A stretch of DNA of 64,000 nt from the NCBI GenBank assembly GCA_011109175.1, contig RDEW01000029.1, positions 158,158-222,157 on the forward strand. Direction: 5' to 3'. Under the pieces are notes generated by a model. That model did not search any database, was not told where the DNA came from, and saw only the letters and a program-made list of their open reading frames with translations. Position 1 is the stretch's first letter. Each line of letters begins with the position of its first letter. This DNA is from Dicyema japonicum (lineage: Eukaryota; Animalia; Dicyemida). Of the stretch, positions 13,330-18,520 are shown piece by piece. Both the position numbers and the translations under genes were made by a program.

Positions 13330-14260
13330 TAATGAATCGTTGTCTCTTTGAGTAACAGTCGTTTTTCACGCATAGCTCTCCCCATTGCATTTATGGTGAT
13401 TGGGATCCGAGGAAGATAAGTTCTTCAGACACAAGCGGTCCAGAGTCTCTTTGAATAACAGTCGTTTTTCACGCATAGCTCTCCCCATTGCATTTATGGT
13501 GATTGGGGATCCGAGGAAGATAAGTTCTTCAGACACAAGCGGTCCAGAGTCTCTTTGAATAACAGTCGTTTTTCACGCATAGCTCTCCCCAATGCATTTG
13601 TGGTGATTGGGGATCCGAGGAATATAAGTTCTTGATAGGGTGTGAAAATACTTCCAGGCAGTAATTTTCCGAAACATGACAAAGCTTTTGAACACTTCTC
13701 TGAAAGTCCGCAATTGTAGATTTCGCATTTAGTGTAATTTAATTCCAGTCCAGCTTCCAACAGTGCTGGAATTATCACTTCCAAATCACGGAAAACAGTA
13801 TCCGGGGGTCCTCCGAGGACCGCATCATCCAGATACCATAGGTTGAGGGGCGAGCGCGAAAGTTTGGTGATTTTCTCTATTGCAAGACAAAACAATAGGG
13901 GTCCAAGGGGATCTCCCTGTTGCACTCCAGAATAGTATGAATTAGGCAGTCCTCGAAAAGTAAGGATGAAGATATGCTGTATGACTGACTCAAAAATTCG
14001 AAAATATTAGGGCATCTCTCAACACACGTCTCCAGGATATTGTCCATCTTTAGATTACTGAAGGCGCTGTTGATGTCCAGTTTGATCAGGACATGTCCCC
14101 AGGAATCTTCTAAATTGCAGTTTATGAATGTCCTCACTGAATGGACAGCGGCCTCGCATCCCAAGTGAATACCGACGCCTACTTGAGTGGGGTTTAAGAA
14201 TTTTGTGACGAGTGGAATAAAATGTCTGGAGGTAATCTTCTGAAGACAGACCCGACCGCA
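13330..14260 (-). mobile_element. CRE-type non-LTR retrotransposon RT fragment
   Basis: GCEAAVHSVR, KLDINSAF, QQGDPLGPLLF and WYLDD motifs. The truncated end (13342-13630) is a ~103-bp unit repeated about three times. Confidence 0.85.
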
Positions 14261-14803: not shown

Positions 14804-17800
14804 TCATTTTTTCTTAATGACGCTTCCAGCAACTCTAGTCCGTGAACTTGCAACCCTAGTACGTGAAGAGACGGGTCTCTAAACAAATTTATAAACTTAA
14901 TACATTAGTATTCCCCACTGTACTAGTTGTAGACTTATCTCCTGAAAACTTAGTCATGTCCAATTGCTCGTTAGTCCTACGTTGACCCAACATAGAAGTA
15001 GTACTCGGGGGTGGTCTCATAGGTTTATTCTCCGTTGCATTTGAAGACTGGTGGGTAGATGAAGGAACTTGTAAGGACTTTTTTGCAACACTTTCTTCCA
15101 TGAAAAGTTTGTTGCCTCCACCAATCCTGAGAGTACTCTTATCCCTCCCAATTGATGTATTCCTGGGACTTAATGTTGGCTTCAATCTACTATAGGGAGA
15201 ATATTCTTTCTTTTTAATACTGGTCCCGGCTAATACTGATTGAAAATTACTCCGTCCATCAGTCACATAAGGACTAGTCATTACTCTTCTACTGGTCCTC
15301 ACAACTTCAGCCCCCCTCTGTGTTGGTTTTTTGCTTGATGGAGTCAATAATGCTGACTTTTCCAATTTCATAGTACCTCCAGCGTTAGCTAATGTTTCAT
15401 TCCTTCTGTCTGTCCTCGAACTCATGACAGACACCGAGTTATTTGATGCGCCGCGACTTCTTCTCCCACGCATAACAGACAATGATTCATTATTTTCTAC
15501 GTGGTCTTTCCTTCCAAGCATAACAGACACCGATTCATTATTTTCCACGTGGTCTTTCCTTCCACGCATAACAGACAACGATTCATTATTTTCTACGTGG
15601 TCTTTCCTTCCAAGCATAACAGACACCGATTCACTATTTTCTACGTGGTCTTTCCTTCCAAGCATAAGAGAGGCCGATTCATTATTTTCCACGTGGTCTT
15701 TCCTTCCACGCATAACAGACACCGATTCATTATTTTCCACGTGGTCTTTCCTTCCACGCATAACAGACACTGATTCATTATTTTCCACGTGGTCTTTCCT
15801 TCCACGCATAACAGACACTGATTCATTATTTTCCACGTGGTCTTTCCTTCCACGCATAACAGACACTGATTCATTATTTTCCACGTGATGGGTCTTCCCA
15901 CTCATAGCAGACGCCGATTCATCATTCGAAACGTGATCTGTCTTCCCACTCATAACATTAACTGAACCAATCTCTGACGTGTGGTACGGATCACCAATCA
16001 TAGTATTAAGCGAATCAATATCAGGCACGTTTTCTTTGTTCGTGGCATTTACATTCGATATGTTAGACTCAACAATAGTAGAAAAGTTAGATTTATCTCC
16101 AATATCCACGATATTCTCATCCTTCTCAGAGGTCTTATGGTTTAATTCTTCAGTTCCCTTATCCTCCGATTGTGTGACAACATACTCCACATTATCCTCC
16201 GCGGCAATATCATCTCCCGTTAAAGCTGTTTCACAGAAATTCGTGGTTTTAACAGTCTCCACGTCACCTTTATGAGTTCCTGTCTCCACATCATCCTCAC
16301 AATAACATTACAGACAACCTCAATAACAATCTCTGTTAACTCCAGTGTATCCCCTTCACTATTTTTGGGGGATAAACTCACTGGTTGAGTTATAATAAAA
16401 TCCACGGGGACTTTCGAAACTCTCTCGGTTTTAATTTCCACCGGTGATTCAGCTATACGTCTACTGGAACTCTTTCCCTTAGTTACTTTAGTCCTAACAA
16501 AACTTTCCACCATCTCCAATACAGGAAAAACAAACCTCCTCATTCGTACTTTTCTTTTCAGGGAGTGCGACAGCAGCTTTTAAGCGCTTGCTCCTAGTTT
16601 GGATGGGAGAAAAGACGAGGGTGTCGGAAAGATTATCAGAAGAGAGCTTAAATATAATGAAATAGTACATCAGCCTGGGGGGAATCCGTCTTAGAGTCCA
16701 TGGATCTTTCTGTGGACTTCTGGTCTTCACACTACAATATACCTTTGTAGCCGCCTTCTGGCGTTTATTAGGATGGACTCGGGTGGATGTCCGGGATATA
16801 TGCGAGATCTCTGATGTGATGGAAGGGGTGGGAACATTCTTGGGCTTAAATATAAAGAAATCGTACATCAGACTGAGGGCAGTCACCCTTAGAGGAGACG
16901 GGTTTTCCCGAGGATTTCTGGTCATCACTACAATATACCTCTGTGGCCGCCTTCTGTCGTTTATTAGGATGGACTCGGGTGGATGTGCGGGATATATGCG
17001 AGATCTCTGATGTGATGGAAGGTGTGGGAACATTCTCGGGCTTAAATATAATGAAATAGTACATCAGCCTGGGGGGAATCCGTCTTAGAGTCCATGGATC
17101 TTTCTGTGGACTTCTGATCTTCACACTACAATATACCTTTGTGGCAGCCTTCTGGCGTTTATTAGGATGGACTCGGGTGGATGTGCGGGATATATGCGAG
17201 ATCTCTGATGTGATGGAAGGTGTGGGAACATTCTCGGGCTTAAATATAATGAAATAGTACATCAGCCTGGGGGGAATCCGTCTTAGAGTCCATGGATCTT
17301 TCTGTGGACTTCTGATCTTCACACTACAATATACCTTTGTGGCAGCCTTCTGGCGTTTATTAGGATGGACTCGGGTGGATGTGCGGGATATATGCGAGAT
17401 CTCTGATGTGATGGAAGGTGTGGGAACATTCTCGGGCTTAAATATAAAGAAATCGTACATCAGCCTGTGGGGAATCCGTCTTAGAGTCCATGGATCTTTC
17501 CGTGGACTTCTGGTCTTCATTACAATATACCTTTGTGGCAGCCTTCTGGCGTTTATTAGAATGGACTCGGGTGGATGAACTTGATTTACTTGAAATTTCA
17601 GACGTCATGGAAGGGGTGGGAACATTCTCAATCACCTTTGGTTCGGTGCAAGGCTGTTGGGGAACTGAATTTAGACACGTGGTATTATTTGGAATTCTTG
17701 ATTCAAATTCTCGAAGCTCAGCATCGGAGTTGATATTGAGGAATCTAGCAGCAATCTCTGCCGAATAGCGTTGACTATAAATATACAAGACGTGTACTTT

Positions 17801-18520
17801 TCTATGATGGAGAGAACCTTCGTTTCAACGACTTCTACGCTTGATTTAAGGGCCTTTATCTCTTTGACTACATCGAACAAGGAAGACTTAAAATTAAAAA
17901 AAATAAAACTTCGCGATGTTTGTTTTCTTCTAAATTTAACTTCTCAGCAGAAACCCTCTCGTTTCGGGCCATAATCGAGAAATTTAGCAACTCCTTATAC
18001 TTCTCAAGCAGTTTTTGATCTTTAATTCAACAATTATTTTACATTTTATTTCATGATCAGGATACTGCGGGTAACTCATAACAAACAAGTTTAATGCGAG
18101 CCTTTATTTATTGTATTTATTATTTATTTATTGTATTTATTAATAATATTATATAACATATTAAAGATATGATCCTCAAAAAAATCCAGGACTTGATGAA
18201 AACCTCGTGCAGCACAAAAAGTTAAAAATCTGTCCTGGATGTCTAAAAACCTCTCCAGCTGACAACCTGTTCGGTCTACAATTCCTTGACAAATGTGAAA
18301 CACCGGAAAAGTCGGTTCACTGCTTTTAGCTTCCCACAAATAAAAGGAGAATCATACCTATCATCGGTGACAGTCTTCGAAGAATGAGCCCACTTAGTCG
18401 AGCCTCAAAACGATCCACGGATGGGTTCTTAATAATGTAGTCAAAAGCTTTGGTATCAACAAGTTTCTGGGATTCTGATGGAACCAGAGCTTGACACGCC
18501 TCTACTGAAATCACCATATG
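14804..18520 (-). CDS. large multi-exon, low-complexity/repeat-rich protein; upstream part weakly formin-FH2-like (5' end unresolved)
   Basis: One frame can be built from ~17880 to TGA 14804-14806 using 22-25-nt GT-AG introns (e.g. 14879-14903, a 23-nt intron just upstream of 16289, 16845-16866, 17437-17458). It joins ORFs 17671, 17438, 16846, 16494, 16220 and 14889. The FH2 resemblance (ALVPSE...FEARL; IQDRFLTFCAARGF) is only tentative. Confidence 0.65.
15419..15960 (-). repeat. 48-bp coding minisatellite, 9 core plus degenerate flanking copies (KDHVENNESVSVMRGR)
   Basis: Directly visible tandem array, in frame in ORF 14889..16289. Confidence 0.9.
16647..17630 (-). repeat. 196/198-bp tandem repeat, ~5 units, each ending in a 22-nt GT-AG element
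   Basis: GT-AG elements at 17437-58, 17239-60, 17041-62, 16845-66 and 16647-68; spacings 198, 198, 196, 198. Confidence 0.9.

Follow-up and report, generated by a model that had tools for sequence, protein, structure and literature searches.

In the dicyemid Dicyema japonicum, a parasite of octopus, a coding tandem repeat of five units appears to carry two micro-introns in every unit, and a 2-nt insertion that would otherwise shift the reading frame falls inside one of them. Judged from the sequence, there is a slightly better than even chance that each unit consists of exon A, micro-intron 1, exon B and micro-intron 2, and that all five encode the same 51-residue repeat. The unit, read on the minus strand, would then be a tandemly duplicated four-part block in which the five 22-nt stretches that end the units (the 22-mers) are all spliced and micro-intron 1 is removed from the three 198-bp units at the very least, such that each unit would add the same Ser/Thr/Lys-rich repeat to an orphan protein of 923 residues. 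The repeat lies in a window of 64,000 nt, the whole stretch of DNA that was analysed, and all coordinates refer to that window (Table 1).

Layout of the repeat and relationships of its units

The tandem repeat was delimited by TRF at 16646-17629, with a period of 198 bp, 5.0 copies, 90% matches and no indel score, and resolves into minus-strand units of 196, 198, 198, 196 and 198 bp in reading order that end at 17437, 17239, 17041, 16845 and 16647. Each ends in a 22-nt stretch running from GT to AG, exactly as an earlier note on this DNA had described. Exon A (102 nt) and exon B (51 nt) are constant in length across the five units, and the sole indel within the repeat units is confined to micro-intron 1. 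Exon and intron are present in every unit, in the same phase and with constant exon lengths, as looked for in tandem exon-intron duplication. The GC content alternates along the unit, from 0.52 in exon A to 0.33 in micro-intron 1, 0.55 in exon B and 0.14 in micro-intron 2.

The earlier note had proposed that the repeat is coding and carries a micro-intron of its own, and the 22 nt of the latter are a normal size for introns of the genome (PMC13644364). Coding capacity is supported by exon A, where pN/pS is 0.09-0.29 (~0.29 for unit 1 against the other units) at a synonymous divergence (pS) of 0.32-0.40. Units 1 and 4 differ at 2 of 21 positions in micro-intron 1, at 16 of 51 positions in exon B, with neither an indel nor a stop among the changes, and at none of 22 positions in the 22-mer. 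The copies are mosaics, exon A being diverged in unit 1 and exon B in unit 4, a structure that points away from one single event and towards gene conversion or unequal crossing-over. The 96-nt parts that follow exon A in units 2, 3 and 5 differ pairwise at 0-1 positions and are copies of one event.

Table 1. Features of the gene model and of the five repeat units, in window coordinates
Feature	Position	Strand	Remarks
Whole gene model	14889..17972	-	ATG 17972, stop 14889-14891; from ORF pieces and junction enumeration
Micro-intron g1	17887..17909	-	23 nt; required to join exon 1 to exon 2; PWM 9.4
Micro-intron g2	17775..17797	-	23 nt, phase 2; resembles the 22-mer of the repeat; PWM 4.4
Exon A, unit 1	17531..17632	-	102 nt, 34 aa; runs on from unique upstream exon 17774-17633
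Micro-intron 1, unit 1	17510..17530	-	21 nt, without insertion; in frame, stop-free; PWM -2.8
Exon B, unit 1	17459..17509	-	51 nt, 17 aa, KST... frame; +0.40 bit/residue; GC 0.55
Micro-intron 2, unit 1	17437..17458	-	22-mer, 196-type; PWM 9.9
Exon A, unit 2	17335..17436	-	
Micro-intron 1, unit 2	17312..17334	-	23 nt; TG insertion at ~17320-17323; PWM -0.7
Exon B, unit 2	17261..17311	-	
Micro-intron 2, unit 2	17239..17260	-	22-mer, 198-type variant; PWM 8.8
Exon A, unit 3	17137..17238	-	identical to unit 2
Micro-intron 1, unit 3	17114..17136	-	23 nt, with insertion
Exon B, unit 3	17063..17113	-	
Micro-intron 2, unit 3	17041..17062	-	22-mer, variant
Exon A, unit 4	16939..17040	-	
Micro-intron 1, unit 4	16918..16938	-	21 nt, without insertion; in frame, stop-free; PWM -4.4
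Exon B, unit 4	16867..16917	-	no indel, no stop
Micro-intron 2, unit 4	16845..16866	-	22-mer, identical to unit 1
Exon A, unit 5	16743..16844	-	
Micro-intron 1, unit 5	16720..16742	-	23 nt, with insertion; PWM -2.3
Exon B, unit 5	16669..16719	-	
Micro-intron 2, unit 5	16647..16668	-	22-mer, variant
Micro-intron g3	16514..16535	-	22 nt; required for the frame change past the repeat; PWM -1.6
Micro-intron g4	16296..16318	-	23 nt; joins to the 1.4-kb last exon; PWM -1.1
Last exon	14889..16295	-	intact, 468 codons

Probable splicing of the 22-mer and the proposed read-through peptide

Introns of 22-28 nt are the norm in the D. japonicum genome. Twenty-one reference introns, verified in HSP70, tubulin and actin genes, measure 22-30 nt, those of the CCT gene are mostly 22-26 nt (from arithmetic on the hit table only), and the commonest intron size is 23 nt. 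Of the intron sequence in this species, GTa and AG alone are conserved (PMC13644364). Longer introns of 78, ~114 and 188 nt are found at three of about 17 junctions in conserved genes, and GC averages 0.185 in the reference introns, with values of 0.29 and 0.01 for two long introns. Candidate introns were PWM-scored against the 21 reference introns and 213 exonic GT..AG look-alikes from conserved genes. Ab initio intron statistics, based on open frames bridged by GT..AG over 164 kb, gave a signal not above that of control dinucleotide pairs, because spurious open frames are too numerous in this repeat-rich genome.

Because introns of this size are normal in the genome, the 22-mers are credible as introns. 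They fall within its micro-intron length window, with an inner GC of 0.11-0.17, and occur in two versions that differ by two substitutions, one in units 1 and 4 and the other in units 2, 3 and 5. Both versions outscore 19-20 of the 21 reference introns, and 0-1 of the 213 exonic look-alikes score equally high. In the reading frame of the 196-bp units a TAA lies inside the 22-mer, and in the 198-bp units all 96 nt are read through without a stop, two observations of the earlier note that proved accurate.

From these observations the earlier note had proposed that the 196-bp units lose their 22-mer by splicing and the 198-bp units keep theirs, yielding two peptide repeats and possibly a splicing-controlled frame switch. 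The resulting 982-aa frame is open, and only 6.8% of dinucleotide shuffles have an equally open read-through frame, making it only mildly unusual. The 2-nt insertion and the variant 22-mer do occur together in all five units. This association has however a single degree of freedom, since units 2, 3 and 5 have inherited one event, a possibility that the earlier note had allowed for. The variant keeps GT, AG and length and loses only 1.1 bits, and thus its splice signals are not weakened; at 8.8 bits, against 9.9 for the 196-type, it still outscores 19 of the 21 reference introns, and the sequence gives no reason for its retention. The 32-residue read-through peptide scores -0.58 to -0.62 bit/residue against the protein's own composition, below the lowest window of the protein (-0.10), and 7 of its 32 residues are aromatic, in a protein that has no Trp. 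Its composition is non-coding and typical of out-of-frame translation (mean -0.38). The insertion, moreover, lies inside a second GT..AG stretch, and a uniform solution with two micro-introns in every unit is available without special pleading, which would make a frame switch unnecessary. Retention of the variant 22-mer, and with it a second peptide, is very improbable.

Exon B, by comparison, scores +0.40 bit/residue (+6.8 bits) in the KST frame, like the remainder of the protein, and the two changes by which exon B of unit 1 departs from the 198-bp units are both synonymous when read in this frame. A pN/pS of 0.8 for exon B of unit 1 against unit 4 gives no clear sign of purifying selection; the test has little power, as pN/pS is 0.67 even in the 48-nt repeat of this gene, which is coding beyond doubt.

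For the 198-bp units the earlier note had also offered the alternative of a single 96-nt intron. Applied to every unit, as one intron of 94 or 96 nt that links exon A straight to the exon A of the following unit, this does keep the frame open. The protein would have 838 aa and 34-residue repeats, the 51-nt middle would be intronic and the insertion neutral. Introns as long as this would not be out of place, given those present in conserved genes of the genome, and the conserved ends and diverged middle of the segment in units 1 and 4, with the middle changing at a rate like that of synonymous sites in exon A, are as expected for such an intron. The middle 51 nt have, however, a GC content of 0.55 against the reference intron average of 0.185, they show neither indel nor stop in either diverged copy, and their composition is protein-like. 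The last 22 nt, in addition, form a complete, top-scoring micro-intron with a GTA start of its own, which would be expected to be recognised by a spliceosome adapted to introns of 22-28 nt. A single long intron per unit is accordingly judged improbable as the main form, and its product could also be a minor, exon-B-skipping isoform beside the two-micro-intron transcript.

A further self-consistent reading was also considered, in which an intron of 16 or 18 nt has the first GAAG as its acceptor and no 22-mer is spliced. In units 1 and 4 the second frame is indeed open, but the length of such an intron is far below that of every reference intron, unit 4 lacks such an acceptor, and the best-scoring intron would have to be ignored; it was rejected.

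The first GT..AG stretch and the 2-nt insertion

The insertion, TG, lies ~12 nt past a conserved GTATATTGTA that follows exon A, at about 17320-17323, 17122-17125 and 16728-16731 in units 2, 3 and 5, and is enclosed by a second GT..AG stretch that begins directly after exon A and is 21 or 23 nt long depending on the unit. Removal of this stretch together with the 22-mer gives every one of the five units 153 coding nt and a common frame, with the gene open for 923 aa. We infer from this arrangement that micro-intron 1 is removed, in which case the insertion, lying in intron sequence, would leave the protein unchanged.

Micro-intron 1 is a weak candidate. Its PWM scores, from -0.7 to -4.4, are in a range shared by true introns and decoys (12 of the 213 look-alikes score equally), and are similar to those of g3 and g4 in the same gene. 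The repeat contains 63 GT..AG stretches with lengths of 20-30 nt; of these, leaving the 22-mers aside, the 23-nt form ranks highest as an independent candidate. The inner GC of micro-intron 1 (0.29-0.37) belongs to an upper tail in which only 1-2 of the 21 reference introns are found, and the 21-nt form is shorter than all 21 (minimum 22 nt). Nor is the fit of the insertion to micro-intron 1 a strong coincidence, since at 22-45% of sites a random 2-nt insertion would hit one or another GT..AG stretch able to restore the frame. Retention of the 23-nt form would shift the frame and lead to a premature stop. In the 196-bp units the 21-nt form may be spliced or may stay in the message, and neither outcome would disturb the frame. 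Retention of the stretch in unit 1, which is in frame and stop-free, would do no harm.

If only the 22-mers were spliced and the stretch after exon A were ordinary exon, the insertion would break the frame, and the locus could be a recent frameshift, either a pseudogene or a truncated allele, in which the unit bearing the insertion later multiplied under neutrality; a misassembly of the two nucleotides would be a variant of the same explanation. Removal of the 22-mers alone does stop the frame at codon 254, and the GC content of micro-intron 1 is closer to that of an exonic decoy than to that of an intron. In the lineage with the insertion the 22-mer has also acquired two substitutions, yet it is identical in the much older units 1 and 4, a pattern compatible with relaxed constraint. 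All other exons are nevertheless intact, including the last, and the insertion is older than the divergence of at least 1% among the copies that bear it. Past the break, four synonymous changes and one non-synonymous change separate exon A of unit 5 from that of unit 2, although these may predate the insertion. The GT..AG stretch that encloses the insertion, finally, is one whose excision brings every unit back into frame. A decayed or truncated gene is thus considered unlikely.

A variant of the two-micro-intron reading assigns the insertion a more active role. The 21-nt stretch would be too short for a length-measuring spliceosome and would be read as seven in-frame residues in the older units; the TG insertion would shift the frame and at the same time lengthen the stretch to 23 nt, with the result that it is now spliced and the frame is restored. 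Two splice states would then exist at the first GT..AG stretch, not at the 22-mer. Such a self-curing frameshift has a rather low probability.

An orphan gene and its candidate tandemly amplified micro-introns

The predicted protein, 923 aa long with both micro-introns of every unit removed, has no internal stop in the joined model and is rich in Ser, Thr, Glu and Lys, with Phe and Tyr together below 2%. Four further introns of 22-23 nt (g1-g4) are required to join the reading-frame pieces of the gene, although for g3 an alternative of 25 nt exists at 16510-16486 on the minus strand. The last exon contains a second coding tandem repeat, at 15466-15926, with a period of 48 nt. Exon-by-exon protein searches found no relatives of the gene, and no D. 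japonicum protein from the locus was recovered either by a word search with a 128-aa piece and the last exon (472 aa as searched) or by HMMER against 1.84 billion representatives and the ESM Atlas; these searches gave either no match or repeat-on-repeat matches alone, to query residues 117-330. The collections searched yielded neither a protein nor a contig derived from transcripts of the gene, and a genome search for paralogues or second alleles of the repeat returned the locus alone. By these searches, the gene as modelled is an orphan.

Spliceosomal micro-introns are known from dicyemids (Ogino 2010, as cited in PMC6543705; Lu 2019, PMC6736024; Zverkov 2019, PMC6543705; PMC13644364). The candidates described here share with them the GT..AG boundaries, a length of 22-23 nt, a conservation limited to GTa and AG and, for the 22-mer, an AT-rich interior, but differ in that they form part of a tandemly amplified unit, and in that micro-intron 1 is unusually GC-rich (~0.33 inner GC) and only 21 nt long in two units. 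The locus follows in an ordinary way from the micro-introns already known in dicyemids. Introns are also known to be gained when an exon-intron block is duplicated in tandem, and the repeat resembles this process in that an exon-intron-exon-intron block is present in five copies, with two putative introns becoming ten in the same phase; it differs in that the units are only 196 or 198 bp, the introns ~22 nt and the copies mosaic. In Paramecium, Jaillon is said to have reported in 2008 that selection acts against tiny introns that are stop-free and a multiple of three in length, with premature stops serving to catch retained introns. The in-frame TAA of the 196-type 22-mer and the premature stop predicted on retention of the 23-nt micro-intron 1 are in keeping with this pattern. 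Unlike it, the 21-nt micro-intron 1 is stop-free and a multiple of three, so that its retention would go unnoticed.

If the two-micro-intron reading is true, a coding tandem repeat has raised the number of introns within it from two to ten, with a 2-nt indel hidden in one of them; if the self-curing variant is true, the locus provides a natural test of a splicing length threshold between 21 and 23 nt. The five near-identical units, in which one candidate intron has 21 or 23 nt and a 22-nt intron comes in two variants, constitute a natural minigene series. Such a series bears on the strictness of length measurement by the spliceosome of dicyemids and on the amount of sequence that it requires, a question raised by recent work on animal introns of less than 30 nt (PMC13644364).

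Anatomy of the repeat and its gene

The repeat, which TRF resolves into 5.0 copies of a 198-bp period, is coded on the minus strand, and the first 102 nt of each unit (exon A) form a single open frame without indel in all five copies. After exon A every unit carries a stretch that starts with GTATATTGTA and ends in a 22-nt GT..AG (the 22-mer), 94 nt long in units 1 and 4 (the 196-bp type) and 96 nt in units 2, 3 and 5 (the 198-bp type). The earlier note's description of the five 22-mers, of the two versions of their sequence and of the TAA in frame in the 196-bp type is confirmed throughout. The key point overlooked there is a second GT..AG stretch directly adjoining exon A. It measures 21 nt in the 196-bp units; in the 198-bp units it measures 23 nt and contains the 2-nt TG insertion. 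Removal of both the 21/23-nt stretch and the 22-mer leaves 102 + 51 = 153 coding nt per unit, with the 51-nt exon B in one common frame in all five units, where its 17-residue peptide is the same in units 1, 2, 3 and 5. The match of 22-mer variant and insertion, previously counted as 5 of 5, is indeed seen, but the units are not independent: with just 0-1 differences among the 96-nt parts of units 2, 3 and 5, the match is one of inheritance.

Outside the repeat, the gene's reading-frame pieces can be joined only via frame changes at four junctions, at each of which a 22- or 23-nt GT..AG is available. The last exon, of 1.4 kb, holds a second coding tandem repeat whose constraint is weak (pooled pN/pS 0.67). 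The gene product is an orphan protein, with no relatives in exon-wise Pfam scans, word searches, a full HMMER search against 1.84 billion representatives or the ESM Atlas, where the only matches were spurious, repeat-on-repeat, at last-exon residues 117-330. Ser, Thr, Glu, Lys and Asn are abundant in this protein and Trp is absent; it is probably disordered.

Features of the gene, its repeats and its downstream neighbour (window positions)
Feature	Position	Strand	Description
Gene	ATG 17972 to stop 14889	-	joined reading-frame pieces
198-bp repeat	16646-17629	-	TRF
g1, candidate junction intron	17909-17887	-	frame change, GT..AG
g2, candidate junction intron	17797-17775	-	frame change, GT..AG
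g3, candidate junction intron	16535-16514	-	frame change, GT..AG
g4, candidate junction intron	16318-16296	-	frame change, GT..AG
24-nt GT..AG, exon A of unit 1	17580-17603	-	in-frame
22-mer, unit 1	17437-17458	-	
22-mer, unit 4	16845-16866	-	
Open +1 frame, unit 1	17437-17530	-	exon B + 22-mer
Open +1 frame, unit 4	16845-16938	-	exon B + 22-mer
Second coding tandem repeat	15466-15926	-	last exon, 48-nt period (16 aa), about 10-12 units
Downstream neighbour	13494-14164	-	decayed open-frame pieces, reverse-transcriptase motifs, LINE-like

The two GT..AG stretches as candidate introns

Dicyemid introns are known as the shortest of any bilaterian, with a mean of 26 nt in D. acuticephalum (PMC2222250) and a median of 27 nt in Dicyema sp. 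(PMC6543705), and the conserved part of D. japonicum introns is GTa and AG only (PMC13644364). In HSP70, tubulin and actin genes of this genome, with junctions set by protein conservation, 21 micro-introns of 22-30 nt were verified (22 nt, n=3; 23, n=1; 24, 25 and 27, n=4 each; 26 and 28, n=2 each; 30, n=1), and a 22-nt intron is thus of normal size here and no oddity. In CCT genes, by arithmetic on the hit table, intron sizes are mostly 22, 23, 25 and 26. All 3n micro-introns (24 and 27 nt) of tubulin and actin contain in-frame stops, their detection being blind to stop-free ones. At 3 of about 17 junctions the conserved genes have long introns instead (78, about 114 and 188 nt), making the length distribution bimodal rather than uniformly tiny; inside the 78-nt intron G and C are almost absent.

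Candidates were scored with a naive-Bayes position model trained on the 21 verified introns and contrasted with 213 GT..AG look-alikes of 21-28 nt inside conserved exons (density 27.8 per kb). Verified introns score from -3.5 to 10.6 bits when left out one at a time, and the decoys average -7.2, with only 0-1 of 213 at 8.8 or above. At 9.9 bits (196-bp type) and 8.8 bits (198-bp type), both versions of the 22-mer rank as first-class candidate introns, and they show every testable hallmark of a dicyemid micro-intron. The two substitutions in the 198-bp type cost 1.1 bits, and its sequence appears to offer no basis for retention. The 22-mer is identical at 22 of 22 positions in units 1 and 4, the adjacent 51 nt having 16 differences; either constraint extends to nearly all of its bases, or conversion over a very short tract (30 nt or less) made the copies uniform. 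In the lineage with the insertion, by comparison, two changes arose in the 22-mer over a much shorter time.

By itself the 21/23-nt stretch is unconvincing as an intron. It scores -0.7 in units 2 and 3, -2.3 in unit 5, -2.8 in unit 1 and -4.4 in unit 4, and 12 of the 213 decoys reach -0.7; its GC lies in the upper tail of verified introns, and the 21-nt form is below the shortest of them (22 nt). Among the 63 GT..AG stretches of 20-30 nt in the repeat it is the top independent candidate after the 22-mers, and g3 and g4 score in a comparable range (-1.6 and -1.1). A 2-nt insertion placed at random in the ancestral exon would hit some frame-restoring GT..AG at 22-45% of positions, so the place of the insertion argues only weakly. 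The in-frame 24-nt stretch in exon A of unit 1 scores -0.8, on a par with the 23-nt candidate; weak micro-introns are thus hard to separate from exon in this genome.

Splicing models and coding evidence

Exons were joined under five models and stops counted, the splicing states of the gene being those we infer from its sequence. The frame is open when both short stretches of every unit are removed (model M, 923 aa), when the 21-nt stretch is instead retained in units 1 and 4 (H, 937 aa), with a single 94/96-nt intron per unit (L, 838 aa) and under the frame switch of the earlier note (R, 982 aa); the choice among these is beyond frame arithmetic alone. Removal of the 22-mers alone (P) meets a stop at codon 254. 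Model P takes the frameshift as recent, and the insertion may be young; the intact state of all other exons speaks against an old break. We consider model P unlikely. Models M and H together are favoured, with slightly better than even confidence, and what the three rivals leave over falls to other readings or to assembly error.

The reference for peptide scores, in bit per residue, was the amino-acid composition encoded by the non-repeat exons of the gene; the protein's own windows average +0.27 (minimum -0.10), and out-of-frame open stretches -0.38. Exon A scores +0.13 to +0.30 and exon B, in the common frame, +0.40 (unit 4: +0.16), and the seven residues read through from the 21-nt stretch score -0.32 and -0.48. 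GC content agrees with this, at 0.52 in exon A, about 0.33 in the 21/23-nt stretch, 0.55 in exon B and 0.11-0.17 in the 22-mer, with verified introns averaging 0.185. Model R, in which the 22-mer is spliced in the 196-bp units and retained in the 198-bp units, finds neither weakened splice signals in the copies to be retained, where GT, AG and length are unaltered, nor a fitting peptide, the 32 read-through residues scoring -0.58 to -0.62, and is highly improbable.

Purifying selection acts on exon A (pN/pS 0.09-0.29). The pN/pS of exon B is 0.8 between units 1 and 4, both old, a test without power because the undoubtedly coding 48-nt repeat gives 0.67; neither diverged copy has an indel or a stop, and at both positions where unit 1 departs from the 198-bp units the change is synonymous in the common frame. 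In units 1 and 4 the +1 frame is also open across exon B and the 22-mer, and persists despite 16 differences in 51; by shuffling, one such frame arises by chance in roughly 7-25% of cases. An exon B pN/pS of 0.8, powerless as the test is, would suit an intron. In favour of the single intron of model L, the 94/96-nt stretch is conserved at its ends with a middle diverging at the synonymous rate, and long introns are not rare here. Its middle is, however, GC-rich and protein-like in composition, and its last 22 nt amount to a complete micro-intron that begins with a GTA of its own. Model L is quite unlikely, yet its product may well be present as a minor isoform that skips exon B.

Probable multiplication and possible birth of introns

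Under model M, the 21/23-nt stretch and the 22-mer would both be spliced, every unit would contribute its 153 coding nt, and tandem duplication of an exon-intron block would have multiplied the introns. Taken whole, the repeat unit would then be an instance of this kind of intron multiplication, and nothing in the data requires a new mechanism. More speculatively, a 21-nt stretch that was too short to splice and was read through may have become a spliceable one of 23 nt with the TG insertion; if so, a frameshift would have been cured through the birth of an intron.
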